Translations under genes and position numbers: made by a program
The notes under the pieces: generated by a model
Told to the model about the DNA's origin: nothing
What the model saw: only the letters and a program-made list of their open reading frames with translations
Databases searched by the model: none
Shown: positions 24,843 to 58,199 of the stretch, one piece after another
Numbering within the stretch: the first letter of the stretch is position 1
How the letters are laid out: each line of letters starts with the position of its first letter
Origin: Lepidodermella squamata
Taxonomy: Eukaryota > Animalia > Gastrotricha
Reading direction: 5' to 3'
Length of the DNA: 64,000 nt
NCBI GenBank assembly: GCA_047495785.1
Contig: JBLDXI010000043.1
Coordinates: 1-64,000 of the forward strand

Positions 24843-25332
24843 TCTGCTGCCACGGCGGTTTGTCGCCCGATCTTCAATCTATGGACCAGATCCGGCGAAT
24901 CAAACGACCATTTGAGATCCCATCGAAAGGCTTGGCCTGCGATCTACTCTGGTCTGACCCTAGCTCTGAAACTCCAGGCTGGCAGCAGAATGATCGTGGG
25001 GTGTCACTAACCTTTGGAGCTGATGTTGTGGCTGAGTTTTTGAATCGTCACGATTTAGATCTGATTTGCCGGGCGCATCAAGTTGTCGAGGATGGTTATG
25101 AATTTTTCGCGCAGCAGAAGTTGGTTACGATTTTTTCGGCACCGAACTACTGCGGCGAGTTTGAAAACTCAGCTGCTGTTTTGTCGGTTGACGAAACGCT
25201 GCTATGTTCATTTCAGGTACTCATTACTTCGTTGTTACAGCTGGAAATTGAATATGAAAATGCTTTGTTTCATTTTAGATTATACGACCTGCTAGGAACC
25301 CTATGTATCAAAGTCAGCGGCCGAACTTGTGA
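24843..25332 (+). pseudogene. Ser/Thr protein phosphatase 1 catalytic subunit, 3' half, interrupted by the Maverick (intron 25217-25278)
   Basis: [47 protein letters not shown]. Confidence 0.93.
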
Positions 25333-29987: not shown

Positions 29988-30313
29988 TTACTCGGTTTCC
30001 TTGTATAGAGCCGTAGCACGCTCGATGAATCAATCGGCTAATATGAGCGAAATGTGATAAAATGAGGTATGAAATTCGATATGAAAGATGTTCCAAACAT
30101 TTCCAAAGTGCGAAGGAATAGATGTTAGATAGGATCTTCATAAACGGTCGTTATGACCATCGCTACCATCTTTGAGAACGCAACATTTGTTCGCAGAGAT
30201 TAACTCTTCTTACAGAAGATTTAATAACCAGACGCATAATATCGCCATAATATTACATACATATGGTAGGCGCAGCGATCCACATTTCGCTTCTTTACGC
30301 GAAAATAACGAAC

Positions 30314-31531
30314 ATGAAGCTTTATTTGGTATCTTTATGCTTCATTTTAGTCCTAATTCTGCTGATCAGCGCCGATGCGAAGAAAAAGCACGGGAAGAAA
30401 CATGGTCGAAAAGCGTCGGCGACGGACGAACAAGAAGCCGGAAGCACGAAGATTAGCAAGAAAGGGAAGGGTGGCAAGAGAGGCAAGACGACAACTTTTG
30501 AGGTAATCGACAGTTCCGAAGAGCTGAAGCAAAATAATGACGATGTCAAGCCTGTCGAAGTCACAACGCCCCTTTCGGAGGCGAAAGAAGACAGCACCGA
30601 TAAGCTGAAGCAAAAGCACGATGCGAAGAAAAAGCACGGGAGGAAACATGGTCGAAAAGCGTCGGCGGCGGACGAACAAGACGGCAGAAGCACGAATATT
30701 GGCAAGAAAGGGAAAGGTGGGAAGGGAGGCAAGGGGGCAACTTTTGAGGTAATCGACAGTTCCGAAGAGCTGAAGCAAAATAATGACGATGTCAAGCCTG
30801 TCGAAGTCACAACGCTCCCTTCGGCGACTAAAGAAGACACTTCCGATAAGCCGAAGCAAAACGATGGCGGCAGAGTGGCTGTCAAGGCTGTCGAAGTTAC
30901 AACGCCCCCACCGGAGGCGGACGAAGACCATCCCTGGTACGTGGTAGACGAAGATGTGGTACATTCTACAATCCATCTTCCTAAAAACACGAAAATTCGG
31001 CCAAATACTTACATATTAAATGCGCCCCGATTGTACGAGGCGTATTTAAAAAGTTACGCTTTGGACGAATTGGCAAAGCAGGCTGGTGTGCATGACAACG
31101 TCAAGTTTGCATTGAGAGCGGTCGCATTCAAAAAGGCAAATGCTGACAGCAAGTCGAATGAAATGCATGTGAACATTTTGGTAGAATCGACTATTGCTGC
31201 TGAACGATGCAGGATCTTTCGGGCGCATATGATCAAACTTTACGATCTTCAGCCTTATCTTGTTGACATAACGAGACATCCTTCGTGTGAGCCTCAGGAA
31301 AACATGCCTGATTTTACAACAGATCCATCCGTGCAACTGCGACAATCTGTTATTGACGATTTGAAGCCAACTTTCTTATTAAAACCCGCTCGCTATCGCT
31401 GTCCAATACGTCGTCCAATACTTCGTCCAATACGTCGTCCAATACTTCGTCCAATACGTCGCCCAATACGTCGTCCAATACTTCGTCCAATACGTCGCCC
31501 AATACGTCGTCCAATACGTCGTTATCATTAG
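30314..31531 (+). CDS. Secreted protein with 2x82-aa Lys/His-rich repeat and C-terminal (R/L)RPI repeat
   Basis: MKLYLVSLCFILVLILLISADA signal peptide; single exon; AATAAA downstream. Confidence 0.8.
   Translation: MKLYLVSLCFILVLILLISADAKKKHGKKHGRKASATDEQEAGSTKISKKGKGGKRGKTTTFEVIDSSEELKQNNDDVKPVEVTTPLSEAKEDSTDKLKQKHDAKKKHGRKHGRKASAADEQDGRSTNIGKKGKGGKGGKGATFEVIDSSEELKQNNDDVKPVEVTTLPSATKEDTSDKPKQNDGGRVAVKAVEVTTPPPEADEDHPWYVVDEDVVHSTIHLPKNTKIRPNTYILNAPRLYEAYLKSYALDELAKQAGVHDNVKFALRAVAFKKANADSKSNEMHVNILVESTIAAERCRIFRAHMIKLYDLQPYLVDITRHPSCEPQENMPDFTTDPSVQLRQSVIDDLKPTFLLKPARYRCPIRRPILRPIRRPILRPIRRPIRRPILRPIRRPIRRPIRRYH
31400..31522 (+). repeat. 12-bp coding tandem repeat (CGTCCAATACKT)
   Basis: About 10 units seen directly. 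Confidence 0.95.
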
Positions 31532-38024: not shown

Positions 38025-38414
38025 ATGCTACTTATCAACGTGATTATTCTGCTCTTGTTAACATCCAATGTAATCCTAGCGGCTCAAGACGAAGGTCCCA
38101 GAGAGCTGCAGGCCCTGAAAGGTTTGTGTGAATACGTTCACTTAAAGCTAATACATTAAAATGTTCCATCAATAGGAAGTCTTAAAAGGCAGCTCTTGGT
38201 TCTGTTGGGTCGGTCACCGGACCTCTGGCGAAAACTGCCGCGTAAACTTCGAATTCGGGTATTGAAAAAGCTGCGAATGGAACATTGCATCGCTGTTCTA
38301 AAGTCTCGAGAATTCTGCCGAGATGAAGGTTCTTTTTACGTCTGGGCGAGAACCATTGCGAAGGAAATCATGGCCGGCAAACACGACAAGGACGTCCTGT
38401 CCCACAAACGCTAA
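38025..38414 (+). CDS. Secreted cationic helical protein family, copy 1 (intron 38122-38175)
   Basis: Signal-peptide exon + conserved LRMEHC..C.DEG.FY.WAR..AKEIMAGKHDK exon. Confidence 0.85.
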
Positions 38415-40952
38415 TTCGATGCGAAAAAACTACAGGCCATACTGGTCACAAAACACTGACAATATTTGTGAATGAATCACCTTCTTTCAATCATCTGTAT
38501 GAATAAAATTTGTCAATTTTTCACAATGGAACAATTAAGACACCAACGATTTGTTATTGATGGTATTGAATTTATTTTGAATCTTTCCAATCGCGAGGAA
38601 ATTTTAACATGGCTACAGAAGTGCCAGAGAGGCTGCGTACGTCTGAGCTATCGCCGTTTGTCAATAAATTAACTTGTTCATTCTTTCAGTTTCCAGGTAT
38701 GTCAGAAGTCACATGTCTTCGACATATTAAGTTAGTTTTAAGCAAGTAAGCTGATTAAATTAAAAAACGGCTGTAATCACCCAAAAAACAAACTTGAATA
38801 AGCCTTAATCCGACGTATTCAAGCGGTCTGGGGAAGTTTACGACAAGTAAAAATGCCTGCACACAAAATATGAGACTGTTCAAATGCCCCTTTCCAGCAA
38901 TTAGTCGGCGACTCTTTTTATAATATCCATACATTTGATAATTTAGGCAATTTCAACCTTCAAGTTGTTCTTGTGATGAGAAGGAAATCAGTTGTCATGT
39001 AAGCTGGCACAAGCGCCCAATTTTCTCCGCCTGTAGCTTCGGAATGATCTGGAATGTACATAAGATCAAACGAGTCATTGCCCTTGTGGCTGAGAAAAGA
39101 GGTACATACCAGAAGGAAATCACTAGATCTAGATGATAGTTCGCGCGGAGATATAAATGGAAAAATATCCCCGTCCAAAATGGCTCATTTCATGACCTAA
39201 TGTCGATCGAATAAGCTGAATGGCTGGCATCGATCATCGGTCCCAATATTTCATACATACGAAGGGTCAAAGTCCTAGAATCTAACCCAGTTGCTATTTT
39301 AGATCTACCCAAGATCTCATTTTCAAGGGATGGGATGCTGAAACTCGTTCGATCTTGTATCATCTATTACATTACTTTATTACAAAGTGATATGCAAGCT
39401 ATTAGTACGTAAAATAATCTTTGCATAAGGCGTTAACCAATTCCAAGCACCAAATCAGACGGCTGAAATCAGACTTGTTTCTTGTACTTATGAAAGAATG
39501 CGCACATTTTCAGGCCGGAATATGTGCACAGAATACAGACAGGGTGCGTAGTACAAAGGTTGCTGGGGTGTCGCAACACTACAGCCCCAGGACTCTAACC
39601 AAAAAACCACAACGGGAACCCTTTGGTTTCTTCGGCTGGGAGCTAGAAAGCAATACAGTTCCCGGGTCCTACTTCGCACTCTGAATACAGATGAAAAAAG
39701 TGAAACAATGATTTTGAGGATTTTGAGTCCGAAATGATTGTTCTTTTCTGTTAAACAAGAGTTTTCTTGTTATAATGAAGCAATAATATCTTTTTCGCAA
39801 CTGTTCCATCCTCGATCTTCTCGTCTCATTCGGGGAGAAAAATTGATGGAAGAGGATTTAGCTCTCATTCATTTTTAAATAAAGCCTTCTAAATATACAG
39901 AGTAATAATGATGAAATAAATGGTATAGTAGTTTTTGATCTAGCGAGCAAAGTAAGCAAATTTTCAGCAAAAGCAACAAAAAATATGCTGATCCGATTAG
40001 AATAGTTATTTTCTATTTTCCGTTTCTCTACTGGGTCGATATGGTTGACTGCCATCTACCAAACCTACATGCATACATAACGAACTACGAACAGCAGCAA
40101 TCTAACAGCTTTTTGCTCCACTCAGTCAGTTTCTTGTGACGTTCGCCACCCATTATAAATTGTCTAAATTGTACCTTAGAATTCAAAAAGGTGTTTATGC
40201 ATTCTTTAACCTTACAGGAAAACTTTCCATGTCGTTTTTGGCCTCAATCATAAAGGGGAATTTTGCGTGTACGTAAGATGTTCAAAATTTTTACCGGATT
40301 ACGGTATTGCTATTTTTAAGCCAATGAATATCCGAATGGCTGCTCTCTTGTCGAAAACGGAAAATTAATTAGTCCATGTTCTAAATATAAAATAGACTTT
40401 CTGAAATAGATATACTCAATTCACACCGGCTAGTGATCGTACCCTATAAAAAGATTATTATTCCCGAATACAAGGAAGAAAATTCGATGTACATTTGACA
40501 AGGTGTCAGTCGTTTCAGTACATGGAGGAAGGTTTGTCTACCTAAGTTAAAACTCAGTTGCACCTCCTTGAACACGCACAACAGACATGACCCGAATTTT
40601 CATGATAAAGGGCGTGGAAAATAATTGAGTGATGTTATCTTAGACTTAACAGTTCATAAGCAATTGTCCGTTGCAAATTGAGCCTAAGTAAAGCTTTTCG
40701 CCGATTGTATGTTGATTCGCAATGATTTAGAAGGAAGGGTTATTTCCCAGGCAGTTGCTGAGACATTCTGTCCACGGTCTAGTAGGCTGTTTATCCTGCA
40801 TAGGTTGAGCGGAAAAACATTGCCTTAGCAAATTAGCGGGATTGCACACCATGACACTTTTTTTAAGCCCATTCGTTTCCTTTTGGAATTCGAATTAAGT
40901 GATATTCAGCTATAATAATACAAGTTTCATCTCAGCTTAGAATAAAGCCGTT

Positions 40953-41472
40953 ATGCTACTTCGTGAAGTAGTAATTTTGGTATTGTTATCATCCACAATT
41001 ATTCTAGCGACTCAGACGGAAAGCTCGAGAAAATGGATAAAATTCCTGAAAGGTTAGTTTTTCGTTTATGCTTTTGTTCATAATGCCATTCTGATGGTTT
41101 TGAAAGTTCAAAATTGTAGAGGTTTCTTCCATATTTCAACAGCCAAGTTCAACGGCCTAAAAATTTCTCCGCAGACACGAATTTTATTACTAGGCAAACG
41201 TTGAATCGTCAACGACCTAATATATTATTCATCTAACAGGAAGCCTCAAAAAGCAGCTCAAAGCTTTGCTGGGTAGGGTTCCAGACTTCTGGCGAAACCT
41301 GCCGCGGACTGTTCGCGACCGGTTACTTCAGAAGCTTCGTATGGACCACTGCATCGCTGTACTGCACTCTCGAGACGTCTGCCGCGATGAAGGTACTTTC
41401 TACATCTGGGCGAGATCATTTGCCAAGGAGATCATGGCCGGGAAGCACGACAAAGACGTTCTGTCTCGTTAA
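40953..41472 (+). CDS. Secreted cationic helical protein family, copy 2 (intron 41053-41239)
   Basis: Same exon structure and motif. Confidence 0.85.
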
Positions 41473-42567
41473 TTCTGCTCTAGAAAAAACCAAGTTACCT
41501 AAGGTCCGAGTGCATAACAAAAATACTGAAAATCATCGATAAAAGAATGAAAGGTGGTATTCCTGTGTGTAGATTAGCCCCTTCATTGGTCTATCGACGA
41601 AGCGTTTGTACAGAGTTATTCTTTTATGTTTTGTACCGGCGGTGTCTTCCTGAGGTTTCCGCAAAGCGATTAAAATGTCACCTCGATGTATAGTTTATTT
41701 TGTTCAGTTTCATTTTCTATTGTCGCTTCAGCCTTTATTACATTGTTTGCATGCAATTCTGCATCTATACATTCGCGCACCGATAAATCAACACAATAAA
41801 ACGTTTATGCACTAGGATGACCGCTACATGGGCCGGAAGATGATTTCCTCAAAAAATCTGGAGCAATATTATAAGGGCGAAGTCTGATCTCCTCTCTTAA
41901 AACGTTCCTACAAATAAAACGTAGTCACATTCCGAGCCGCGGCAAGCTCAAATGTTTATCAAAAGATTCATGTCTGCAGATTAGCCCCTTCATTGGTCTT
42001 TCTTCCACAGTATCGTAAATTTCGATTATGATGTCGTCGGCGAACATCGGGTTCGCGCTATTCCGCTCTATCGTTTCCTGATCACGATGTCGATATTTTT
42101 CTATCAATATATAACTCACTCGACACCATTTTGATAAATCGGCAAGGTTTTGATAACTCAGCGAACTCAGCGAAATTTGCAAGGCATTCTGATTATTCTA
42201 TCCGAGGCTCTAGCTTAGCACAATATTCGTGAAATTCCGTCAGCTAGGTGACGCTGTCTTTGTTACAGCCGGAACATTTCTCCCCGACAAAATCACCGGA
42301 TACATGAAAAAGACTTATTTAAAACCACGTCGTCTTTATTCTGATATTGCACGAATGATTAAGAACCAATAAATTATAAAAAAAAATGAATTAAGTAATA
42401 AATATTGCGGATCCGTGCGGATGTTTCCATGACGTCAACAATAAGTTCGAATGAGTAATAGAAATTTACAAACAATTTACAAGAACTGGCAATAGGCAAT
42501 CATTTACATGCAAAAAGCATTGAATAAGAGCTTTCACGAGGAATTCGAAAATATTAACGAAGCTAAT

Positions 42568-44412
42568 TCAAGGTTTCTTTGATCTAGGCATTTTTCTTGG
42601 CGATTGTTTGGGTTTTTTCTGAGAACTGAGAAATTCCTTAAATTTCAAGAAAATTTCAGCATGTTCCTGAGGTGAAATAAATTGCTCGTAGATTTGCTCG
42701 GCAACGCCATCGGTGTGGTGGAGGTAGCGGTTGACCTGTTTCTGTTGGGCGGGAGTCAAGCCAGGAATTTGATTGTGGCGAGAACTTGTCTGCATCATGC
42801 GCCTTTGCATTGAAAAGTGATATGATGCGAGACTCGGTCGGGCAGTAGATGGAAGAGTTAGGACGAATTTGTCCCACAAAATACTTGCGTAGTAGGACAA
42901 GCAATCAAACCTCTTGCCATCACTTCGTAGCAGTAAATACTTGGCGCTTTTAGGGTCAGCCGGCTTCGGCCGGAACTTGCGGCGGTATTCGTCGTAGAGT
43001 TCCACAAGTTCCTGGTCCATCGTAACGTAGGGGAAGCACCGCTTACCGTTCTTCGTCTCCAGGACATGAACTGTCCAAGTGCCCGGGATCTCGGAAAATC
43101 GCTTATCGAATTCAGCCTCCTTCATGCCTGCGAGACTCGAAGGGCGGCAGCCATTGAAGGCGTTCATTTTAACAACAATTCTCGCAATTCGAAAGGCATA
43201 CGGCACAATTTGGCCTGCTTTCTCCATCTCGGCGATCGTCTGCGAAATGAATTCAGCGTATTGTGGCGCTAGATGAATAGTGACCTTTTCATCAATTCTT
43301 TCGTGTTTCAGCGCAGCCTGTGCCTTGCCACGTTTAGCATTGCACTGCTTGATCCTCGGGTCAAGGAATCTGGTAATGATGAAATCGATTTTTTCACGCT
43401 CCGATTCGCTAACAAGACGTCTCGGTAAAAGGAAGTTGTCTCGAAACATTTGCAAGAAGTCTTTTAAAGCCATGAATCTCATGTAGAGACTGTGGCACGA
43501 GACTGGCTCTTCCCCACCGCGTAAATTTGTCGTAATCAATCGATCCTCACGAGCCGCGAAATCGAACCATTTGTCAACATTGAGCATATCCTCAACAGTG
43601 AATATGCCTGCCAAATTGAGGATGCCGGTTAGTCCGGAATAACGCGATCGAACAGTTTTAGCATTGCGATCATCTTGCGTTGCTTCCATTTTAAAATCTG
43701 GATCTTTATAATGCTCGAGGGCCGGCTTCAAGCGAGGATCATTGGTGACATATTTTTTACTCAATTTTCTCGTCTTCTTAATTGGGCTTGGAGACAGCGC
43801 GATACGGGTTAATTTCTTTGACAACGTCGCCTCGCCTGATGTCTCTTCGTCAGACGATTCATCGAAATAAGTGTCGTCCAATACGACGCCTTCATTCGAA
43901 GTCTGAACATGTGAAATATTAGATTCGCTCTGCTGCCGAGAGGAGACAGCGCCATCGTCACCGAAATACTCGTTCTCACCCGAACAATTGGACTGATCAA
44001 ATGAGCTGTTGAATGTGAAATCGACTGGATGAGAGACATCAGCATCCATATTCTGAAGAGCAGGTGTAGAGCACGCAACTGGAGCACGGCGTTGGAATTT
44101 CGTGCTCTTCGGGCTTCCGCAAAAAACGCAGTAGCGTTGCAGATGACGATCCTTGCGGTTCCGCTCATTGAAAGGCAAATATGGAGCAAATTTTCCGTTA
44201 CCAGCGCGGGGTCGGCACTTCTTTTTAGCGAAGTGACTTGAAATATTTCCCGAGCAAGTATTCGTTCGGTCAGCAAGGGCATCGTGATATCGAGTCGTTT
44301 CGCTCGTAGTTGCCTGCATCGTTGAGAAATTATCGCTGCTTTCTTCAAATCGATCTTCGGGATCCATCAAGAATAGCGGAAAAGGCAAGTCTCCGAAAAC
44401 AAACTGGGACAT
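42568..44412 (-). CDS. Tyrosine recombinase (614 aa) with disordered N-terminus
   Basis: NGCRPS (Arg), ETKNG (Lys), FSMQRR (HxxR equivalent), LHHT (His), QIY (Tyr) in canonical order. Confidence 0.88.
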   Translation of the reverse strand: MSQFVFGDLPFPLFLMDPEDRFEESSDNFSTMQATTSETTRYHDALADRTNTCSGNISSHFAKKKCRPRAGNGKFAPYLPFNERNRKDRHLQRYCVFCGSPKSTKFQRRAPVACSTPALQNMDADVSHPVDFTFNSSFDQSNCSGENEYFGDDGAVSSRQQSESNISHVQTSNEGVVLDDTYFDESSDEETSGEATLSKKLTRIALSPSPIKKTRKLSKKYVTNDPRLKPALEHYKDPDFKMEATQDDRNAKTVRSRYSGLTGILNLAGIFTVEDMLNVDKWFDFAAREDRLITTNLRGGEEPVSCHSLYMRFMALKDFLQMFRDNFLLPRRLVSESEREKIDFIITRFLDPRIKQCNAKRGKAQAALKHERIDEKVTIHLAPQYAEFISQTIAEMEKAGQIVPYAFRIARIVVKMNAFNGCRPSSLAGMKEAEFDKRFSEIPGTWTVHVLETKNGKRCFPYVTMDQELVELYDEYRRKFRPKPADPKSAKYLLLRSDGKRFDCLSYYASILWDKFVLTLPSTARPSLASYHFSMQRRMMQTSSRHNQIPGLTPAQQKQVNRYLHHTDGVAEQIYEQFISPQEHAEIFLKFKEFLSSQKKPKQSPRKMPRSKKP

Positions 44413-44616
44413 TAATTCTCTAAAATCGACAAAAAAAATCAGACCACATGAATCATTTTGATTAAATTGAGGAAATTTAATGAGCTTACATGTCAGAGCA
44501 TGGAAAAAGAGAAAAGAGCATTGAGTATAACATAGTATAAAATGGGTATAAAAAGCCGCGACACAAAAGCGAATCGAATGTCAAAACACGCAGAGTCACA
44601 ATGCATCAATTTAAAA

Positions 44617-45759
44617 TCAATTCCGTTTCCTGGTTGAAATTCGTCGTCCACAATTTGAGCAACCTGAACAATTACTCGCCTTCAAAATGCCTTGCTTCAT
44701 TATTTCATTGCTAGACTCCATGAGAGGCACAGTCTCTTGAGGAGGCTGATTGGTTGGGGTGAATTGGACTTTTTTGTTTTTTTTGAAGATGTTATGTATA
44801 TGATTGAAAAGAGAAGACGACAAAGTCCATGCAATTCGCGCCAAATAGTAGAAAAATATAAACGATCTCACGCCGAAAGAAATGAATAGAATCAAATAAC
44901 GGATGACGATGGAAACTGTGTAATAATCCAAATAAAAAATGCCTAAAAGTCGACCAAACCAGTAGTACACAACGCTTGTGTAAAAGATTTCAATACCCAA
45001 GTCAAATACTACAGCCAGAAACCCTGACTGAGACTCAAAATAGACGGCTGCGATAAAGCATATTATTTGAGGAACGTAATGAGTCGCAGAAAATACTGAT
45101 TCAAATTCGTAGATTGGGAAAAAATGACAGACTATAAACTGGAAAAATTTATATTTGCTCGCGACGTTAAATACAGTAGAAGCAAGTTCAGCAGCTTTCA
45201 TGCCAAAACTTTTGTAGGCTTCCAAATCAAAAAGCGAATCGGCCAATGAAAGATGTGTACCGTTAGTAGCGAGGTAAGCGCACAAAGGGCTGACCAAACT
45301 GAAAGAAGTTGCCCACGTTCGAATATCTTCTTCGGGTAGAGTCATCACACAAGATATAGTGCTACAGGAATGTCTCACGAAACAAGACATGAGCTTCATC
45401 GTCAACTCATCCCATTTTTCAGTAGGAAGCGGCCACTCGCACATCTTCTCCGCTGAAAGACCAATCTTATAAAAACAAGCAAGTGATAACAATAGAGCCA
45501 TACCAATTTTTGTGAAATTTGCCAAACACTTGTTAGACCCGGTTTGATACGCACGGTAGTATTGAAGACCGCTAGCAACTTCCAATATCTCCGGCTTTCT
45601 CGCAATCGTGGTATCACGCTTCCGCACGATATGACCTTGGTCGTCTCTATTGAGCTTGAAAATGTCAAGCAGAAACTCTCCGCTGGCAGGATAGCCCATC
45701 GAATCCGTAAGGAGCATCAAGTAGACGCAAAGCTGAAAAGCCTTCGGAAGTGAAAACAT
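44617..45759 (-). CDS. GEX1/KAR5/Brambleberry-like membrane protein (probable in-frame 51-nt intron 45453-45503)
   Basis: Signal peptide, six-Cys domain C-x11-C-x18-CF...C..C-x22-C after splicing, ~3 C-terminal TM helices. Confidence 0.62.
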   Translation of the reverse strand: MFSLPKAFQLCVYLMLLTDSMGYPASGEFLLDIFKLNRDDQGHIVRKRDTTIARKPEILEVASGLQYYRAYQTGSNKCLANFTKIGMALLLSLACFYKIGLSAEKMCEWPLPTEKWDELTMKLMSCFVRHSCSTISCVMTLPEEDIRTWATSFSLVSPLCAYLATNGTHLSLADSLFDLEAYKSFGMKAAELASTVFNVASKYKFFQFIVCHFFPIYEFESVFSATHYVPQIICFIAAVYFESQSGFLAVVFDLGIEIFYTSVVYYWFGRLLGIFYLDYYTVSIVIRYLILFISFGVRSFIFFYYLARIAWTLSSSLFNHIHNIFKKNKKVQFTPTNQPPQETVPLMESSNEIMKQGILKASNCSGCSNCGRRISTRKRN

Positions 45760-45985
45760 AAAGTAATAAGAATAAACCTAAAACACAATGAAATTGTAAG
45801 AAACGTTTATTGAGTTCAAGAATATTGAGCATATTAAATATTAAATATCTGTTAACTCTTGATTCACAACGACAAGATTAGCGATTCACCGTCGTAGGAT
45901 GATGATAAGTAATTTGATACAGGCATTTCAAATGTTAATTTGATATAAACGATCCAAGGATAATATTATTCAATTGGAAACAATG

Positions 45986-46183
45986 TCAGTCCATATTGAG
46001 AGCACGGGCAATTACGAATCCGACCAGCACTGCCATGATTAGCGAAAGGGCGTATTGCAAGATAGTCAGTTCGAGTTCGGATCGGCTCAGCTCTGTCGAT
46101 CTAAAGATGGATTGATCTTTGTTAGAGTATGCAAGAATTTCGTGCTTGTTCATCGTAACAGCTAAATATAAAAAAACAAACAT
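45986..46183 (-). CDS. Small membrane protein (65 aa)
   Basis: TAATG stop/start overlap with upstream ORF; C-terminal TM helix. Confidence 0.5.
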   Translation of the reverse strand: MFVFLYLAVTMNKHEILAYSNKDQSIFRSTELSRSELELTILQYALSLIMAVLVGFVIARALNMD

Positions 46184-46524
46184 TAAACTTGAGAGTCAAG
46201 GCGATTGTAGTGCAGTTGCTCGGCATCGTTAGACCGCTTCTTAGATTTGCACCGGAAGCGACGAGAGGCGAAAACAATTGAGGTGACAACAGCCACGAGC
46301 AAGAACAAGGATAGACAAAATATGACTATCTCATATGCCTCCACTGGGCATGGTGCAGTAGAGTTGTTTTGAAGGCTGAAAACTGACGTCGTGGTGTTTT
46401 GAAAAAAAGACTCGGAGTCAGTGGTCTGAGCTGTTGATTGAGTAACTGATTCCGAATCAATGGTATCTACTGAGTCACTGTTAACCCAGCTAAATGGATC
46501 GAAAGGGTTAAACTTGCGGCCCAT
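46183..46524 (-). CDS. Single-pass membrane protein (113 aa), Ser/Thr-rich ectodomain
   Basis: S/T-rich N-term with NxT/S sequons, TM helix, basic stop-transfer. Confidence 0.65.
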   Translation of the reverse strand: MGRKFNPFDPFSWVNSDSVDTIDSESVTQSTAQTTDSESFFQNTTTSVFSLQNNSTAPCPVEAYEIVIFCLSLFLLVAVVTSIVFASRRFRCKSKKRSNDAEQLHYNRLDSQV

Positions 46525-46810
46525 AATGAAGGACTGAAAACTGTAAACTGAAAGAACAGTGTAAAATACAGTAGTGCAGAGCTAAACCAGGTTTAAATTC
46601 AAATGAAACGGGAGCCAACGGTTCCGCAACGGTGCCGCATTGTCTTTATTGTCTTTTGTCTGCTAATGAGTTTTTAATGTTGCTAACGACTCATTTTAAA
46701 TTTTATTCTTGAACAATATCAAAAATTAATATAAAAAATAGTGAGATAAATTTATTTATATTATTTTATTTTAACAATTAATGTAAAATAATATGGCCGC
46801 CGCAGGCGAA

Positions 46811-46892
46811 TGTGTCGAGTGGTGTCGAGTGGTGTCGAATGGTGTCGAGTGGTGTCGAATGGTGTCGAGTGGGTGTCGAATGGGTGTCGAGT
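46811..46892. repeat. Eight ~10-bp subterminal repeats GGTGTCGART
   Basis: Seen directly; unit equals inner part of the element's TIR. Confidence 0.95.
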
Positions 46893-47588
46893 GAGTTACC
46901 ATGTAGTATTCTAAACTAACTTACCGGTGGAGCTATCCACCTTATCAGAAATATGTTGATCGTATGAAATTTCATGGTTATTGAGACACAAAACACAAAG
47001 CGTAAACCGATATTTGAACCGCAGGCCTACACATTGCCGAAGAAAAATCTCACGTTGCATCGATCAATCTCAAAAGATTAGAAAAATCAGAAGAAATTGC
47101 TCATAATCAAGTTCAGGACTCATTTTTTGCATGATTGCAGCATTGCATGATCGAAAGTATAAGTTGAATATAGCGTATAGCGGGGTGGGCGGTGGGCGGC
47201 AGAACGAGAATCGCCAAGAATATAATCTAATGGCGAAAACATTCAAGAAACTTCTTGAATCTTTGCCAAGTCAGTCGCGTAACTAGAGCATCCGTTTTTT
47301 ATGCTCATCCTTCCGCTATCTGATCACTACGTATCGCCTTACAGACGAGACTTAGGAATTTGTGGGCTTCCGTTTTCAAGCCAAATCGTGCTCCTCAAAT
47401 TCTAATTGAGCGCGGATAGACGTCGTTATGCCAAATTAGTTTCCAGCAAAGTGACGGAAAACAGACGTTTGCAATTTAATCTGAAAGAAAGTTACGAGCT
47501 TAGTAATCGTCAACATTTTTTCATTTTAGAAATTCTGAATAATTGATCAACGTATCGGCGCTACACAATCAACTCAAACAAGGCTGAT

Positions 47589-47971
47589 ATGCGGTTTCAC
47601 AGAGTAATTATTGTAGTCCTATTACTTTCCTGTATAATCCAAACTGCTCGGAATGAAGGGTCGAAAAAACTGAAACAAGCCACGAAAGGTTTGTTTTTCA
47701 AGAAGTAGTAAATATCAACTTATTTTCTCTATTTGAAGGAAGCCTCAAACATCAGCTTTTGGCTCTGTTGGGTAAGTCACCAGACTTCTGGCAAAAGCTG
47801 CCGCGAAACCTTCGAATTCGGGCACTGAAGAGGCTTCGCATGGAACATTGCATAGCTGTTCTACAGTCTCGAGATATCTGCCGTAATGAAGGTTCTTTCT
47901 ACGTGTGGGCACGATCTAAGGCAAAGGAAATTATGGCCGGCAAGCACGATAAAGACATCATGTCTCACTAA
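47589..47971 (+). CDS. Secreted cationic helical protein family, copy 3 (intron 47689-47738)
   Basis: Same exon structure and motif. Confidence 0.85.
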
Positions 47972-48858
47972 AGCTAGTTTAGATAATATTCAACTTCTAT
48001 TTTAACAGTTTTCACTTACGCTGTCAGTTATAATTTGGTCAGTTATAAGCGCGCCCATCAACGCTATGCCCACGCCTTTGTCTTGATATATCATTAATAT
48101 AGATATATATTATTTGATGTACTATAGTTGAATTGTTGAATTATTAAATTTTTATATGGAAGGCAAAGGAAAATGCAAGGAAAAAGTTTCGTTTCGTTCG
48201 CCATTTTTGTCTTTTAATAATCATACTGTTTAATTGCAGATTTCTCAGGATTTTTAAGAATGTGCTTCAATGTCTATCAGTCAAGCTTGCTTTCGCAGTT
48301 CTCTAATTATCAGTGCCCTGTGGGGCCAACGAAACTTGGGCACTCTATTTTTCACGAGTTGATAACTTTCCGATTCAATTATTTCAATTTCAGCCCAATT
48401 CAATTCTTAACAGCACAGTCAAACTTCTTGCTAGGAGTGTTTCAAATCAGACTCCAGACTGCAGTTTACAGTCCAAAATCAATCGATCGAAAAGCAATAG
48501 TCCTCATCAAATATTCATTTACATACTTATAATAGAAGCGGATGTTTCCAGGATACAAGAGATTTCGTGCAATAAGTTTGCGCATCAATCGATCGACAAA
48601 AATTAGGCCTTATCAACCATTCATTTACACGAAAGTGGATGTGAATTTTCGTCGCAAATAGTGATGCTATCGATGACTTTTTCGGTTCCTGTTTCGGTTG
48701 CATCGGTTTTTGCCTGATCAAGCTTTATATGAATATGTGTTGCCTCTGTTAGTCTGAGATTCGAAAGACCTCAATCTAACACAATTTTGCGAATGCTTTA
48801 TTTGTATTTATCAAAGCTTTTTAAATATAGAATGCTAGACAATATCAAAAGCTGAATA

Positions 48859-49260
48859 CCGTACTGCCCGAAAATAATGTCAGCCTTCAGTCGAATAAAT
48901 GGCAGCCTCAAATAAATGTCAGCGGTTAGAGGTCGTTCGAAATAATAAATTTCAGGCCCGAAATAAATGGCAGGTCAACGGCGGGGACAGTACTGAAGAT
49001 CACTAATGTGATCATTATAGCCATTCTGAATGGAAATAATTTCTACTCTTGGCACATAGAAAGGTCAGGTACCAATTTTTTGGGTCAAAACACGTAGAAT
49101 CTCAGGAAAATGTATGCCATTTTGGTACCTAGGCAAGTTACTAGTTGGTTCGAATAAATAAATGTCAGGCCCGAAATAAATGTCAGTCCCTTTTAAATGT
49201 CAGGGGTTCATCAACGTTTGAAAAAAACAAATGTCATGGTTTTTGTTCCGGGCAGTACAG
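48859..49260. mobile_element. Tc1/mariner-like MITE (TA flanks)
   Basis: TA-CCGTACTGCCCG / CGGGCAGTACAG-TA; internal AATAAATGTCAG repeats. Confidence 0.6.
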
Positions 49261-49354
49261 TAGTTCATATTGAGTAAGTGAATGCTTGGTGCATCCTGCA
49301 TCCTAGGTCTACATTTTATGGCGATGACAAATTTTAACACTTCTTCACTACTTA

Positions 49355-49847
49355 CAGTAGAAAATGGATATAGTGGACGCTCTCCGTGCCATCGAGTTTG
49401 TCCATAGCGATTTCGCACTATATAGTGAAATGTTGCTGGACTCAGCGGATTAGCATAACTTTTGTCTACTTGCCAGAATGTCATAGGTAGGAAAGCTGAG
49501 GTTTGAGGACGAAATGCCATTTTTACCCTCAAGTGAAAGACCCTACCACGGTCAAAAAGCTTGTCATGAAAGTGAAAATTCGTGATTTCTTACTAAAAAT
49601 TCATGCAAATTTGTCAGCCCGTTTGAGAAAATGCTCGAATGTCCACTGTATCGCAAATAAAATAAGTGCGCTTAATAGGACATGCGTCCTCATTTTTCGT
49701 CCACTATGTCGATTTTCCACTATATGTGTTGTCAATTATTGTAGAGCAATTATTGTAGAGCAAGGTCTTTTTAAGCCTCGGTCACTCGAATTTGTCCACT
49801 AAAGCGAAAGACTAATAAGCGGTAACCACTCTAACGATTTTCTACTG
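49355..49847. mobile_element. Tc1/mariner/pogo-like MITE (TA flanks)
   Basis: TA-CAGTAGAAAAT / ATTTTCTACTG-TA. Confidence 0.65.
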
Positions 49848-49921
49848 TATATCGAAAAATGGTCACTTGTCTATGGCTATGATGGCTATGATTTGAGATT
49901 ACCGCCTCAAATGACGCTGAT

Positions 49922-51290
49922 ATGTATGACAAAGTCCGATTGTTCCTACTTCATAGAAGGAATTTTCCTAATGCCGATATGCTGCTGTTCGAGTTTGTCA
50001 AGGGCGAAAACGGTCAAAAGCATAAATCAGTTCATCGGCAGCTGCTTCGTGATATCCTTGAGAGTTTGAGTTGCGATGAGCTGTTAGACATTTGCTGCGT
50101 CTATGAGCGAGGCGAAATCTTTCATCCGTGTCCTCTATGGCTTGGAATGGGAAGACGATTTCAGTCGCCCAAAATGCGATGAGCTCGAAGCGTTCGGAAC
50201 GCATTATTCCTATCGCGTGATTGCTTGGATACTTGCACGACTGCACGGAAAACAAGATCACAGCCAAAATTACATCGGTTTTAAAACGAGACTTAGCAGC
50301 AGGAATACGCCATTTCAATCCAACAGAGACAAGCGCAGCTATAGAACTGGCGGCGATACAGGGAGACTTGGATCTATTAGCTTTCATAGTTGAAAAATCA
50401 CTTGGTACCGTTTCTGCTGCAAGCAACTACGGCGAAGCCCTGCTGTTGAATGCGCTGCGAATTGGCAAATCGATGTTGTTCGATTCCTGGCTGAGAAAGC
50501 ACCAGCCATAGTTTCTAGTGATGATAACAACGGAACAACTTGCAATTTGCATAGCCACTGCAAATGGCCACATGGAAATTGTTCAGTTTTTGGCCGCGGA
50601 AGCACCAGCAACCGTATCTACGTCAGATAATGACGAAATAACACCGCTTTGGAACGCCGCTGCCAACGGCCACATCGGCGTTGTTCGGTTCCTGGTTGAG
50701 AAAGTACCAGCAACGGCCTCTACGGCTGATTTCAACGGAGCAACCCCGCTTAGCATAGCCGCTGGAAACGGTCACATTGACATTGTTAGGTTCTTAGCAA
50801 AGGAAGCACCCGCTGATGTTTCTACGGCTGATGACTACGGCATAACCCCTTTTATCCTTAGCCGCTGTTAATGGACACATTGACGTTGTTCGATTCCTGG
50901 CTGAGAAAGCACCAGCCACGGTTTACACGGCTGATAACTATGGCAAAACTCCGTTATGGAATGCCGCTAGGTCCGGACACTTCCAAATTGTCAGGTTCTT
51001 GGCAAAGGAAGCACCAGCAACTGTCTTAACGCCTGATGACGACGAAACAACACCGCTTTGGAATGCCGCTGCGAATGGCCACATTGACGTTGTTCAATTC
51101 CTAGCTGAGAAAGCACCAGCTGATGTTTCTGTTGCAGGGCGGTACAACTACGCTTAGCGCGGCCGCTGCAAATGGCCACATCGACGTTGTTCGGTTCTTG
51201 TTCTTATTCAGTTCTTATTCGGTTCCTAACTTCCAAAGCTCCAGCAACCGTTACTACTTACTACGGTTGATAATTACGGCGCAACTGATG
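49922..51290 (+). pseudogene. Ankyrin-repeat gene, multiply frameshifted
   Basis: Several ~34-aa repeats TPLWNAAANGHIxVVRFLAEKAPA spread over different frames. Confidence 0.8.
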
Positions 51291-52508
51291 TGTAGAACAT
51301 CGAGGTGCACAAGAGAAATGTTCCCGCAATTTTCGGACTATCGACTATATGTAATTCCACTGATTCCATACTTAAAGTATGGAATCAGTGTATCTCAATT
51401 TATTATTCTTGCTATTCTATTATAATTACATAGAGAATTCGAAGCTTCCAAGAATTTTGCATATTGAGTTTTACAAGTATCTAAACCACTAAACGGCGAA
51501 GGTCCTCAATATGGCTAATTGTCTATTTTCCTTCATATGCTTAGTGTCATTATATTGAGAATAAAAACTACGCGCTTCAATTTTCTGAACGTTCTGAATG
51601 CGTGAAAATTTCCGATATTAGAAGAAAATGAAATAATAAAAATCAATTCTGAGCGCCGAATTTTCCGACTACCTTGGACGGTATTTTTCAAGGCAAGTTT
51701 TGATTTTTCTAAGGCCATATTATATTTCTTTCCCATGTTTGTATAGAGCAAATTTTGCTCTAGATCGTTTCCCCCGTTTCTAGTATCGCCTTATAGATGC
51801 GATGGTGGTAGCAGCAACGGTAGCAGCAACGGGCACGCCATTTTGCTATTCGACATTGTGCTATTTTTAAACCAATAATTAATAATTAATGATTAGCTGC
51901 TCTCTTGTCGAAAATTGTTACAATTAGGTAAATTGTCCAAGCTCTCAATTCGTTAAAAAGGCATTTAAAAATAGAAATGCTCATATTACTCTGGCTACTA
52001 GTTTTAACAATACGCTCTATAAAAAGATTATTTTTAATGGAAAAGGCTAAACATGTCGGCGTGAATCGACAAGGTGTCAGTTGTGTCTGTACATGGAAGA
52101 AGGTTTGTCCACCCAAGTTAGAACTCATTTGCACGTTGAACACAGCCATTAGATATGACCCGAAACTTCACGAAAAAACACATGGGAAGTCATCTTCGAC
52201 TTTATAGTTCATAAGCAATTGTCCGTTGCAAATTGAGCCAAATTAACGCTTTTCGCCGATAGTATGTATGTATGTGGATTCCTTAGATTGGGAACGGAGG
52301 GTTTTTCCAGACATCCTGTCCATTGTCTAGAAGGCAGTTTACTCTGCATAGTAACTAGCTTGAGCGGAACAAATATTGCCATCGCAAATTAGCGGGGCTC
52401 CACACCATGACACTTTTTAACGCCCATTCAAAACGTTTGCTTTTGGAATTCCGATAAACTATTCTGATAAACTGTGAAGCTTAAATAAAACCTTTAAATC
52501 AAGCTGTT

Positions 52509-53050
52509 ATGCAACTTCGTGAAGTGGTAATTTTGGTCTTGTTATCATCTACAATCATTCTAGCGACTCAGACAGAAAACTCGAGAAAATGGACGAAGTT
52601 CCTGAAAGGTTTGTCCTTCTTTTTTTTGTTCATAATTCCATTCTGAAGATTTTGAAAGTTCAAAATTGTAGAAGCTATTTCCATGTTTCAAAAATCACAA
52701 GTTATATGACTTCAACTTCAACGGACTAAAAATTTCTCCGCAGACATGAATTTTATGACCAGGCAAACGTTGAATCATCAACGAGCTAAAATCTTTAAAA
52801 TCTTATTCTGCTAACAGGAGGCCTCAAAAAGCAGCTCAAAGCTTTGCTGGGTAGGGTTCCAGACTTCTGGCGAAACCTGCCGCCGACAGTTCGCGACCGG
52901 CTGCTTCAGAAGCTTCGGATGGACCACTGCATTGCTGTACTGCACTCTCGAGACGTCTGTCGCGATGAAGGAACTTTCTACATCTGGGCGAGAGCATTTG
53001 CCAAGGAAATCATGGCCGGGAAGCACGATAAAGATGTTCTGTCTCGCTAA
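52509..53050 (+). CDS. Secreted cationic helical protein family, copy 4
   Basis: Close paralog of copy 2 including flanks. Confidence 0.85.
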
Positions 53051-54706
53051 TTCTGCTCTAGAAAAAACCAAGTTACCCCAGGGTCCGACGTCATACCAAA
53101 AATACTGAAAATCTTCGATAGTATGATGAGAGGTGGTATTCCACCTGGAGATTAGTCACTTCATTGTTTTATCGACGAAATTATTGTATTATTGGCGTAC
53201 CGGCAGTGTCATTCTGTCGTTTTCGCAAAGCGAGTAAAATTTCACCTCGACGTTTGGATTATTTAGTTCTTTTCGTTTATTGCCTTAAGATACATTAACT
53301 TAATTTACAGCTTTAATTACATTGTCTGCATGCAGTTCCGGCGTCTACTTACGTGCACCGATAAATTAGCACAATAAAACGTTTATGCACAAAGATGATC
53401 CCAACAAGGGCCGAAAGATGTTTCCCTCAAGATAATCTGAAGTGATACGTGGGGCCAGTCTTATATTTCTTTAAAAGTACAAATAAAAATGGAGCCGCGA
53501 GTCGCAGTTCGAGTCACGACAAGTTCTTATTCTCGAAAAATGGAGGCCTACATTAGAGCGCCATGAGTAGTTAAGGGATGGATGCAAACGGTTTTTCACA
53601 CGGTGGTCATAGTCAGTATGTTGACAAATGAATTATAAAAAGACAATGAAATGTCGTCCATCTGGCTAGATCGAGCAAAACCTGATCGCGAGGAGACCCT
53701 GAATGATAGCTTGATAGAAGTTGATAGCACGAACGATGGCACACCCAGTCTCCTCTCACCTTTCACCAGTCGTAACGATTGAGCTATTTAGTAGCCACGA
53801 CGAGGAAGGTTATAGGTATGGCGACAGTAAATAAACTGAATGGCGTTTTTAGCAACATAATGATTATCGAGCAATCAAATCCGCAACAATGTGCGCCCTC
53901 AAAATGGCATTTATTGGAACTTCGATTTCAATTGATTTGTAAAATTAGAATAAAATGCATTAAAGCTTAAGGATTCACTTTCAGCATAGCATTATCAAAT
54001 AAGTCTCGGGCTGGGCGGCAGAACAACTTACAATAGAAACACATGCCGTCACTCTCAACTTATTGAATCTTCGCCAAGTCAGTCGCGTAACTACAACGCC
54101 AGTTTTTCCTGTGTATCTATTGCATTGGCCATCTGTTTCTCCTAGCTACATAATATTCATTACAGCTAAGCAAAAGCTAAGTTTAGGGAGAATGATGTAA
54201 AGAAGATTCGATATCTCCTCGAAAATCACCCAAAATAATTTTTGGCCGAGATAAGTGGTCATTATCAAGAGAAAGGGATCACCAGTTGACAGAAAATTCT
54301 AGCAGGGCGATCGCCATTGTTGAAAAGCACAAAATTACCATGTAAAATAGGACATGGTTTCGAAAGAAATGCGCACGCACAAGGAAAACGTGTCAGAAAA
54401 ACGTGGATGCGTACTCGGATAACTGCTTTCTCTATGGCTTCCCTTTCTAGATGAGACTTGAGAACTCGTTGAATTGCAACAAAAGAAATCGTACTCCTAC
54501 TTCCTTATAAGCGCGGATAGACGTAGTTAGTAGTTACCTAATTATTTGTCAGTGCAAATAGTGACGGAAAACAGACAATTGCAATTCAATTTTAAAGTAG
54601 GTTACGTGCATGAGCTGCTGCTCTAAATTGTCTAGATTTCATTTTAGAAATTCCGAATAATTGATCAACTTTTCAGAGCTTCAAAATCAGCTCAAAGAAG
54701 GCTAAT

Positions 54707-55101
54707 ATGCTGTTTCACAAAGTGGTTTTAGTAGTCCTGTTGATTTTCTGTATAATCGTAACGGCTCGCAATGAAGGGTCGAAGAAACTCAAGCATGTCA
54801 TGAAAGGTTTCCCTTTGATTAATAAAAGTAGTAAATATATCCATATTTAACTGTTTTTCTATTCAAAGGAAGCCTTAAACGGCAGCTGTTAGTCCTTTTG
54901 GGAAGATCGCCAGACGTCTGGCAAAAGCTGCTGCGAAAACTTCGAATTCGGATCCTGAAAAAGCTGCGAATGGAACATTGCATCACTGTTCTACAGTCTC
55001 GTGAATTCTGTCGAGATGAAGGTTCTTTCTACGTCTGGGCGAGAGCCATTGCGAAGGAAATTATGGCCGGCAAGCACGATAAAGACATTCTCTCTCGCTG
55101 A
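54707..55101 (+). CDS. Secreted cationic helical protein family, copy 5
   Basis: Close paralog of copy 3. Confidence 0.85.
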
Positions 55102-55477
55102 ATTGGAAAGCAAAACTTTGAGGGCTGACTATTTCTCTTTAATGACGACTTTGATCTCTCATCTTCAAATTTCTGAGTTTTGTAGATCCACAAACCTCAA
55201 AGGTCGGAAAACTCTTAAGTAACATTCTTTTACTTCTGAATGTTCGAACCCCTTAGTCTTATGAAGCAACCATTGCACTCTAATCTCTAATCAGGATTTG
55301 TAGAATTAAACACGAGATCATAGGTAATCGATTTGAGGAGGCGGTTGTTCCTTCATTTGCTTTCCGATCATCATTTCTGCAATTAGCACTTTAAATGCCA
55401 AAAATAGACTGCGAGGTCCGATATTTGGGTCTAATTCCTGGGTCTGTCAAAAAGTCTTTTATTTCGGGTCAACGATG

Positions 55478-55800
55478 CGTCGAGGGGCAAAATGCCTGAC
55501 GGCAAAGTGTAGGCCATGACCTGGCGGTTCTTTTGACACCGAATTCGGGGCCAAAGACTTCAAGGAACGCACAGAAATCAAACTTGAAAAACAGTGAAAT
55601 TTCGATTGTTGCGCCATAATCTGGGTCTAATAATTAGGTCCAATTCTTGGGTCTGATTTTTGGCTCTAATCCAAAATTTTCGACGTTATTTCACTGTCAT
55701 TTTCAATGACCTGCTCAGACCTTGTGGCCCCGAATTCGGTGTCAAAAGAACCGCCAGGTCATGGCCTACACTTTGCCGTCAGGCATTTTGCCCCTCGACG
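55478..55800. mobile_element. MITE with perfect ~76-bp TIRs
   Basis: CGTCGAGGGGCAAAATGCC... / ...GGCATTTTGCCCCTCGACG. Confidence 0.85.
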
Positions 55801-56644
55801 GAACAGTTCTTGCTTTGACGGAACAGTCACTCGTCGCTCTGCTTAACTGAAAAATATTGAAAGCGATATATTCGGTCACTCGACCGGTTCATCCTGCCTG
55901 GGAGCACATTGCCAATCAAGTAGCAGGGAGACCCGAGCTAAAAAAAATCTCAGTCGAAATTAGCAGGAAAAATCCGGAGTAGGGCCCCTGCTGTTTGGTC
56001 AAAATTAAGTTCATTCAAATTGTCCAGGCCAACAACTTTGTAAACTTTGTGGGGTAAAAATAGATTGCTGCTAATCTCAATTCATTAACGCCATAAGCAG
56101 ACACTACCAATTATCAATCTGGACAAATCTAAGATAAAAAAGTCATAAAACCGCATCATTCGTGTAACCTAGAACACGGACTGTGAACGTGGTTTGTGGT
56201 TTGTCCATGATGTCCCGTACACATTTTTCAGGTCAAGCAGACAAATATCACCTGGCCTCGTAAGGAAGAAGCCGAATGGCTAACTCGAATATTAAAAGAG
56301 CGTAATAAAGCCCACGCGGGTTGGCTAGTTTTGTGATTCATGATGTAATAGGTTGTCAGTGGTAAGATAGTTCTATTTAGAGATGTTCCGAGTCTGTGTT
56401 TAAGCTTATCAAATAAAAAAGAATGATTATTGGAGAGGTTATTTTGACATGTTATCAAAATATCAGGCAGCTGATTTAGGGCTATGAGCGTGAACATTTA
56501 CAAACCGCCAACAGAGACATTGCTAATTAAAGGGGCGGTTAAATACCGTGACGTCTTTAATAGCGTATTTAAAGCGAAACCGGAAACCGCTGTTCCGGAA
56601 ATTTCAAAGTTTTATCAAGTTTTTCAGCTCAAAATAGAGCTGCT

Positions 56645-57086
56645 ATGCCATCTCTCAGATCAGTTATTTTGGTAATGTTGACATCCACTGCAATTCTAGC
56701 GACCCAAACCGAAAGCTCGAGTAAACTACTGAAATTCCTGAAAGGTTGGCTTTTTTAAATTAGAGATTTTCGAATTTGAGCTTGTTTATCATGTCACGTT
56801 CAAAAGGGGCTTTTTAAACGTTTTCCGCTTAACAGGAAGCCTCAAAAAGCAGCTTATTGTTGAGTTGGCACGGGTACCAGGCTATTGGCGAAAGGCATTG
56901 GGACAACTTCGCTTTCGGGTACTTCAAAAGCTGCGAATGGACCACTGCATGGCCTTGCTACAGTCTCGAGAAGTCTGTCGCGATGAAGGCATTTTCTTCG
57001 TTTGGGCGAGGGTCGTTGCGAAGGACATTATGGCCGGCAAACACGATAAATACGTTCTCGCTGATGCTGCCTCAAAGCAAAACTGA
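56645..57086 (+). CDS. Secreted cationic helical protein family, copy 6
   Basis: Same exon structure and motif. Confidence 0.82.
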
Positions 57087-58199
57087 AAACTGAAAATTTG
57101 TGTAGTTGTAGTTATAGATTTCAATCCGTTTTTAGGATCAAAATTATAGCGAACTCTCTATGAAAGGTCAACAACAGTAATTATCCTGTGAAGGCTATCA
57201 ATTGAAATTTCAGGCCACTATTTAGCGGAACCAATCTGTTACATAAGGTTGCAATTTTGAGCAAAAATCAAGTTTACCTAAAAATCGAGGTACGCAGTTA
57301 GCCATTCGGTTTAATCCTGTGACATACTAATATACATTTCGATTACTGCTTGTTTTGAATCACTGCGTGATTCTAGAGCATTGTGAATTCGACTTCTGGA
57401 GCTGTTAAAATATTCTAAATCAGACTTGGGCGAATTAGGCTCTGCACATTTTTGAGCACCTGTACAATTTTCAATGTATCGTATCTCACTGCCGTTTTCG
57501 CTAAGAGATTACCTATTTGCACATTTGAAGTTCCATTTAGTCATTTGAATTGATTTAAAACTTCATAACGTTTCTGTTGCACACCGATACATCAATAAAA
57601 TAAAGTTTTATTGTACCAACATTTTCTGCTTCGCTTTGTCTTTTGCCCAATATCGATCAACAATATTTCTCTAAGAGTAATATATGAGACTGGAAAAGAC
57701 CGATGTTGGATTGATCCTGAGCCTTGAATCTGATTCATTTCGGAGAATCGGCTGAACTCATTGAAGAAAAGCTACTCAGGGCTTTGATGGGATATATTAT
57801 GCCTACAATTAGAAACAGAGATGGCTTAAGTTAGCGAAAATTCTCCGCATGTCATAACTTTCAGTTCAGCTGAATAAGGGCAAAGCAGAGAAGTGCCCGG
57901 CTAATCGCATCAAGACAATATATGAGCTAGCGCTAACGAGAAAAAAGTTATCATAATACGATAATGCAAATATGACAGGCATTGGACGTGATCTAAATCT
58001 GTAATCTGAATCTGATTCAGAATCATCCTTAATTGCATGTCTTATGTCTTATGTGTCTTATGCTTCCACGTAAAATCAACATCATGGCTTGCTGAAGTGC
58101 GTGGCTATATGACATGTGATGTAAGTTACAAAATCATCGTAGCTAAGAAAGGCACGCCGCAAATCCGGAACCATTTCACGGAGCTACCGATCAAAACAA

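Follow-up and report, generated by a model that had tools for sequence, protein, structure and literature searches.

We analysed a stretch of 64,000 nucleotides (nt) from the gastrotrich Lepidodermella squamata (assembly GCA_047495785.1, contig JBLDXI010000043.1, positions 1 to 64,000; hereafter the window) and focused on a candidate mobile element whose genes lie on its minus strand (Table 1). An initial annotation of this DNA had described a 4787-bp segment bounded by perfect 16-bp inverted repeats and holding four co-oriented genes, for proteins of 113, 65 and 380 amino acids (aa) and for a tyrosine recombinase. Both repeats were located and are the only two exact copies of TAACTCACTCGACACC in the 64 kb, and all four genes are intact open reading frames (ORFs), which together fill 74% of the element. 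The first two ORFs share one base in the stop/start overlap TAATG. Hydropathy scans found one strong transmembrane (TM) segment in each of the two small proteins; the 380-aa protein has 13 cysteines, an N-terminal hydrophobic leader and several hydrophobic segments towards its C terminus.

Table 1 Positions of the element, its ends, its genes and its non-coding regions in the window
Feature	Position	Strand	Description
Whole element	42112..46898	-	4787 nt between the 16-nt repeats; genes on the minus strand
Left terminal inverted repeat	42112..42127	+	3' end in gene orientation; contains one inverted copy of the 11-nt motif, 42117-42127
3' non-coding tail	42128..42567	-	From the recombinase stop to the left repeat; function presumed
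ORF4, 614 aa	42568..44412	-	Intact predicted tyrosine recombinase; disordered, zinc-finger-like N-terminal third; two-domain recombinase from about residue 230
ORF3, 380 aa	44617..45759	-	Hydrophobic leader, Cys-rich helical N-terminal half, multi-pass hydrophobic C-terminal half
ORF2, 65 aa	45986..46183	-	One TM segment, residues 41-59; least certain gene
ORF1, 113 aa	46183..46524	-	Ser/Thr-rich N-terminal part, 3 N-x-S/T sites, TM segment at residues 66-84, basic tail
Non-coding leader	46525..46810	-	From the array to the first ORF; presumed promoter or accessory region
Motif array	46811..46893	+	Eight direct copies of the 11-nt motif (at most 1 mismatch), spacing 10-11 nt; presumed recombinase-binding sites
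Right terminal inverted repeat	46883..46898	-	5' end in gene orientation; outermost unit of the array

The two ends of the element are unequal, a feature that the initial annotation did not mention. Eight phased copies of the 11-nt motif GGTGTCGAGTG occupy the right end, upstream of the genes, and one inverted copy lies at the left end. With one mismatch allowed, 0.5 matches to the motif would be expected in the window; nine were found, each of them at one of the element's two ends. Tandem Repeats Finder (TRF) reported the array with a period of 10, 8 copies and 89% matches, and the spacing of its units, 10-11 nt, is about one helical turn. The observed number of near-matches to the 16-mer was reached in none of 100 dinucleotide-preserving shuffles of the window; these shuffles and the motif count rule out a chance origin of the inverted repeat. 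The array motif had no match in the JGI metagenomes.

Directly inside the array, which is 57% GC, lies a 100-nt block (46700-46799) of 14% GC that contains small palindromes. Phased repeats beside such an AT-rich block are reminiscent of plasmid origins; the element has no replication gene. The 3' tail carries a candidate AATAAA (42335-42340, minus strand). A few bases before their start codons, both the recombinase ORF and the 380-aa ORF carry the sequence ttttag (44418-44423 and 45776-45781, minus strand), which is similar to a splice or trans-splice acceptor.

TA is its own reverse complement, and the ends therefore fit a second description just as well, a 14-nt repeat with TA on either side. 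This single copy agrees with both descriptions, and a direct repeat at its ends amounts to TA at most. The second description would place the ends with those of the Tc1/mariner/pogo type, in which a DDE transposase acting in trans would recognize the 14-nt repeat and duplicate TA, the recombinase and membrane genes being passengers or part of a fused Crypton. Such a duplication could be seen in the outer TA of each repeat, and MarCry-1_FO, in which a Crypton and a Mariner are fused and which has 16-bp repeats and TA duplications, provides a precedent (PMC3212892). A pogo-type DDE_1 fragment also lies close to the genes of one relative described below, on the opposite strand about 0.5 kb beyond its array and TM ORF (L004:5765-6277). 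However, the element contains no DDE transposase and the window none with matching termini, the terminal motif occurs nowhere else in the 64 kb, and tandem arrays recur beside the recombinases of the relatives. The asymmetry between the ends, eight copies against one, is moreover what would be expected of a site-specific recombinase. We consider it improbable that the ends are of the Tc1/mariner type.

The 614-aa product of ORF4 had no match in sequence searches of Pfam, PHROG or PDB, and a Pfam scan of the four ORFs of the element detected no reverse transcriptase (RT), RNase H or DDE domain. A structural model of residues 230-614, built by AlphaFold2 (AF2) with the relatives of the protein, reached a predicted local distance difference test score (pLDDT) of 79 and a predicted template modelling score (pTM) of 0.67. 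Searched with Foldseek against the PDB, this model matched XerH, Tn1549 Int, XerA, Cre, lambda Int, TelA and vaccinia topoisomerase IB, and 49 of the 50 best fold matches were tyrosine recombinases, protelomerase or topoisomerase IB, with YopR as the sole exception. The matches in the viral library BFVD were integrases and VLF-1 only, at 9-14% identity. The top matches in PDB and BFVD were recombinases throughout, with alignments that spanned 350-390 columns. A profile of the family compared with the PDB found Tn1549 Int as the best match, with Arg II and the His...Tyr pair in register, and one relative matched PF00589 weakly, yet across the whole model.

Five catalytic columns are conserved in every non-gap row of the family alignment: R423 (11/11), K454 (10/10), R537 (11/11), H566 (8/8) and Y575 (8/8). 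Judged by its predicted fold and by these residues, the 614-aa protein is an intact tyrosine recombinase from a lineage that has been sampled very sparsely, in agreement with the initial annotation, which had called it intact: the ORF is open, the model matches recombinases and the Arg-Lys-Arg-His-Tyr columns are retained. The N-terminal third is of low complexity and includes a C2HC-type zinc-finger-like motif common to most relatives, one of which matched PF13913 weakly; the His column of this motif is not His in the window copy. Neither DUF3504 nor GCR1_C was matched at E up to 0.1 by the window recombinase or its 10 relatives, and DUF3435 had no match in the window recombinase or the relatives.

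These relatives came from an exhaustive HMMER search of 1.84 billion representative proteins, which returned 10 proteins only (E 2e-28 to 5e-4), all of them unnamed and encoded on metagenome or read-assembly contigs of 1.4-6.3 kb. A word-indexed protein search found nothing for the alignment of the recombinase family and, for the relative P0010, only P0010 itself; the single recombinase protein had no match in IMG/VR or the JGI metagenomes. Contig origins were looked up for eight of the 10 relatives, leaving out P0007 and P0009 (ENA). Seven of the eight derive from BioSample SAMN13674978 (ERZ23486764/787/839, ERZ27332993, ERZ27333047 and SRR10912803). The eighth, P0010, is the most distant relative and derives from an unrelated, very large run, ERR12037361, so that the family extends beyond the SAMN13674978 sample set.

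Intact and decayed recombinase genes coexist in one sample set, as several divergent lineages. Four of the 11 recombinase products called for the relatives stop before the His/Tyr segment, and the lineage on contigs L001 and L002 has one frame break or short intron. Satellite-like tandem repeats with units of 53, 40 and 171-175 nt flank the relatives (L002:4425-5136, L001:1-123, L006:803-1383 and L006:5425-5751), which suggests repeat-rich neighbourhoods. Intact and truncated genes side by side, close to satellites and to the pogo-type DDE fragment, are what one would expect if the family consists of transposable elements. The relative on L001 and L002 measures about 5.6 kb at most, judged from where the two contigs overlap and from the satellites at their outer ends.

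The state of the recombinase bears on a further explanation, in which the segment would be an immobile remnant or a domesticated cluster of ordinary single-copy host genes, with the inverted repeat as a relic. In its favour, a single copy was seen, and in the window protein both the histidine of the H-x-x-R motif and that of the zinc-finger-like motif are missing. Yet the 16-nt repeats are perfect and the eight-unit array intact, all four ORFs are open, the other five catalytic columns are conserved, and among the relatives, which fall into several divergent lineages, one sample set contains intact as well as decayed copies. An immobile or domesticated cluster appears very improbable to us.

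The 380-aa protein had no match in Pfam, PHROG, PDB or the word-indexed protein search, and its single-sequence model (pLDDT 46) was too poor for fold comparison. Members of its family were sought by an iterative search over the six-frame ORFs of all fetched loci. The gene directly 5' of the L001/L002 recombinase encodes a protein 29% identical to the 380-aa protein over 298 residues (BLASTP E 5e-35), and in all, the family adjoins the recombinase in three other lineages, L001/L002, L008/L009 and L016. The gene upstream of the recombinase in L016 (L016:300-1215) has one break, a frame change or a short intron, and its pieces were compared apart. Five cysteine columns are invariant in the 6 rows of the family alignment.

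On L001/L002 the order of the whole locus is that of the element: array, Ser/Thr-rich TM ORF, small TM ORF, 380-aa-like gene and recombinase. Here the array is a 10-nt tandem repeat, the first ORF encodes 120 aa with a leader, a Thr-rich stretch, one TM segment and a basic tail, the second ORF has one TM segment, the member of the 380-aa family has 327 aa, and the recombinase is about 35-43% identical to that of the window. Counting this one, three lineages other than that of the window have short tandem arrays close to their genes. Those of L001 (395-437) and L006 (79-121) are 88% alike over 43 nt, stand in opposite orientation relative to the recombinase, and accompany recombinase proteins that, despite the similar arrays, are only about 25% identical. 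The array of L004 consists of about five 17-nt units (L004:4727-4826).

In the initial annotation the three membrane-protein genes were regarded as cargo, a label that we would withdraw. Because the 380-aa family is linked to the recombinase in three further lineages and the full gene order recurs in one of them, the three genes for membrane or secretory proteins look as if they belonged to the core of the element and had not been captured from a host as cargo. The conserved linkage and order also strengthen the idea that these genes serve the element itself, and we infer that their likeliest role would be in its own persistence or spread at cellular membranes.

The two small ORFs require separate consideration, as it could be argued that only the recombinase and the 380-aa protein are real and that the 113-aa and 65-aa ORFs arose by chance in the leader. 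The small ORFs show no sequence similarity across lineages, so that only position and architecture are common, and hydrophobic ORFs arise readily in AT-rich DNA; in Pfam the 113-aa protein gave a weak, sub-threshold TMEM154-like match (E 2e-5). Nevertheless, ORFs of the same architecture occupy the matching position in L001/L002 and follow the array in L004, the stop/start overlap is exact, and the other 59 kb of the window contain just 2 TM-rich ORFs of at least 100 aa. A chance origin of the small ORFs is thus an unlikely explanation.

The element is located between copies 2 and 3 of a tandem host family with six copies (38154-57100), whose 287-nt unit, beginning at 38154, 41218, 47717, 52796, 54847 and 56814, encodes a conserved peptide exon of about 68 aa. 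BLASTN aligned the host sequence on the two sides of the element, at about 76% identity, with a paralogous region whose spacer lacks it (40308-41863 with 51859-53442, and 47383-47972 with 54486-55102). The unmatched interval between these alignments measures 5519 nt at the element locus and 1043 nt in the paralogue. Homology breaks off about 250 nt and about 480 nt outside the repeats, and the spacers themselves cannot be aligned. The initial annotation had derived an insertion from intervals of about 0.5 and about 5.2 kb; the size contrast stands and an insertion is plausible, but those figures were approximate and there is no clean empty site. Insertion after the duplication of the host unit is compatible with these sequence comparisons. 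No Rfam family and no tRNA gene was found in the window, and there is therefore no tRNA target within it.

Given these ends, genes and relatives, we consider that the segment is probably an intact member of a family of small eukaryotic DNA elements that has gone unannotated and whose members are moved by their own tyrosine recombinase. Several observations weigh against this interpretation. At the locus, target duplication amounts to nothing beyond the ambiguous TA, the paralogue comparison within the window did not find a precise empty site, and the 64-kb window holds one copy and no second insertion; exact-protein look-ups of the recombinase and the 380-aa protein likewise found no further copy. 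Among the relatives, neither terminal inverted repeats nor any circular signature or circular overlap was found in their short contigs. The gene order is also not constant: L008/L009 have the 380-like gene on the downstream side of the recombinase, and L004 has the recombinase first, then the array and then a 103-aa Ser/Thr-rich ORF with one TM segment. The membrane proteins match no known family or structure in sequence searches of Pfam, PHROG and PDB, and the small TM proteins lack sequence similarity between lineages. Finally, the residue three positions before Arg II, usually the His of H-x-x-R, is His in none of the 11 rows of the recombinase alignment, so that activity of the enzyme is not guaranteed. 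This histidine varies in some active recombinases too, and its loss is not disqualifying.

If the segment is such an element, its movement might proceed as follows. The recombinase would bind the 11-nt motif, and each of the two terminal copies of the motif would be one half of its core site. Once the ends meet on an excised circle, the joined site would be palindromic, as in lambda and Tn916/Tn1549 and as proposed for Cryptons, and this circle could then recombine with a short target sequence. The additional phased copies may provide accessory sites and so give the element its unequal ends, in the manner of arm sites or of the third FRT repeat. The order on L004 is a circular permutation of the order in the element, with similar spacings, on a contig without terminal redundancy. 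Such a permutation fits head-to-tail copies, a circular form or a different point of integration.

The permuted order and the membrane genes can also be combined in another way. The element could be an integrated agent akin to a virus or plasmid but without a capsid, whose membrane proteins form or target carriers or fuse cells and whose recombinase serves for integration only. The conservation of the membrane module with the recombinase across deep divergence would agree with this, as would the circularly permuted order among lineages (recombinase, array and first TM ORF in L004), the compact intronless coding with its TAATG overlap, and the 14% GC block adjoining the phased array. The initial annotation had suggested a transmission function from the membrane genes, which no family match of any membrane protein supports. 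On the other side, genes for a capsid, for replication or for packaging are absent from the element, none of the membrane proteins matches a viral family or a PHROG, IMG/VR holds no relative, none of the relatives' contigs is circular, and the fold of the recombinase has no special viral affinity. We regard an agent of this kind as quite unlikely.

Taken further, the proposal would define a class of integrative agents of eukaryotes, about 5 kb in size and devoid of capsid and replication genes, that carry a fixed set of membrane proteins and whose DNA leaves the cell by membrane carriers or cell fusion. The set would comprise a multi-pass glycoprotein rich in Cys, together with one or two small proteins that cross the membrane once and have basic juxtamembrane tails; integration would fall to the recombinase. 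Such agents, proposed here from their genes, might be the eukaryotic counterpart of membrane-vesicle plasmids or pleolipovirus-like agents. We put forward both the class and this composition of its protein set as low-probability suggestions, and retain an element moved by its own recombinase as the preferred interpretation.

The remainder of the window has a eukaryotic context, with a Maverick-like unit, chromodomain integrases and ankyrin repeats. A Maverick/Polinton-like unit is present twice, in inverted orientation, at about 800-23800. Paired ORFs in the two copies encode an integrase with rve and chromodomain (2471-3589, plus strand, and 20072-21283, minus strand), a Pox_A32-like ATPase (7847-8329, plus, and 15329-15811, minus) and TBP-domain proteins (1474-1938, plus, and 21721-22500, minus); several further ORF pairs have no family. 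Protein-primed polymerase B was found as short fragments only, around the centre (10745-12916). Elsewhere in the window we noted an ORF with a Metallophos domain (24719-25351, E 5e-15), a 422-aa ORF without a family that holds a 243-nt tandem duplication (30263-31531), and 6.3 copies of a 102-nt unit at 67% identity (50475-51120), whose 34 codons correspond to an ankyrin-like periodicity.

Of all classes of DNA transposons, the tyrosine-recombinase elements of eukaryotes, or Cryptons, are the least well understood: it is difficult to say where they begin and end, and apart from the recombinase they are thought to encode little. The family described here combines sharp ends built from a presumed binding motif, an asymmetric array of that motif, a conserved set of membrane genes and a recombinase without an annotated relative among 1.84 billion representative proteins. 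Literature searches found no described element of matching build and no matching paper for the sample accessions, and the family would escape current pipelines of transposon annotation. If its mobility is confirmed, the element would offer a clean natural model for the recognition of ends by a eukaryotic tyrosine recombinase, and would raise the question of why a transposon needs proteins of the secretory pathway.

Among known systems, several that also encode a tyrosine recombinase were rejected. Elements of the DIRS/Ngaro/VIPER type differ in that the present element has neither RT and RNase H nor split or long terminal repeats. A fungal Starship was rejected because the element lacks a DUF3435 'Captain' and measures 4.8 kb as against tens to hundreds of kb. 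A Polinton-like virus or virophage was likewise rejected, as no Pfam or PHROG match to a capsid or packaging ATPase was found in the element.

The best fold and profile matches of the recombinase are to lambda Int, the integrases of Tn916/Tn1549 and enzymes of XerH/Cre-type elements. The element would share with bacterial and phage integrative elements the logic of two inverted core half-sites, one at each end of the integrated form, and of additional accessory binding sites. Its recombinase, however, is only 10-14% identical to theirs, lacks the His of H-x-x-R and is encoded in a eukaryotic context, and the element has no excisionase or conjugation genes. The FLP/FRT system of the yeast 2-micron plasmid likewise pairs a eukaryotic tyrosine recombinase with short inverted binding repeats and an extra direct repeat, but FLP inverts a plasmid segment for copy amplification and does not act in chromosomal insertion; no sequence affinity or specific fold affinity of the element's recombinase to FLP was found. 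MarCry-1_FO resembles the element in having a recombinase gene within 16-bp inverted repeats and a possible TA duplication (PMC3212892), and differs from it in having a DDE transposase of its own.

The closest comparison is with the Cryptons (CryptonF/S/A/I; Goodwin 2003; Kojima & Jurka 2011, PMC3212892). Like them, the element is a eukaryotic DNA element of a few kb with a tyrosine recombinase as its sole recombinase and no RT, for which a lifestyle of circle excision and reintegration can be proposed; some Cryptons also carry one extra gene, for a C48 peptidase. Cryptons, in contrast, have no terminal inverted repeats and end in terminal direct repeats of 4-6 bp (PMC3212892, PMC13465315), whereas the element has a 16-nt inverted repeat and an eight-unit motif array. 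In its recombinase neither DUF3504 nor GCR1_C, signatures of the A and F groups of Cryptons, was detected, nor did the sequence match a named protein. The element also carries three membrane-protein genes, at least one of them conserved. The initial annotation had left the element unclassified, and it indeed fits none of Crypton, DIRS and Starship as these are defined. By comparison with published descriptions and by domain scans, the element is Crypton-like in its proposed lifestyle and is set apart from Cryptons by two features, its ends and the signature domains of its recombinase.

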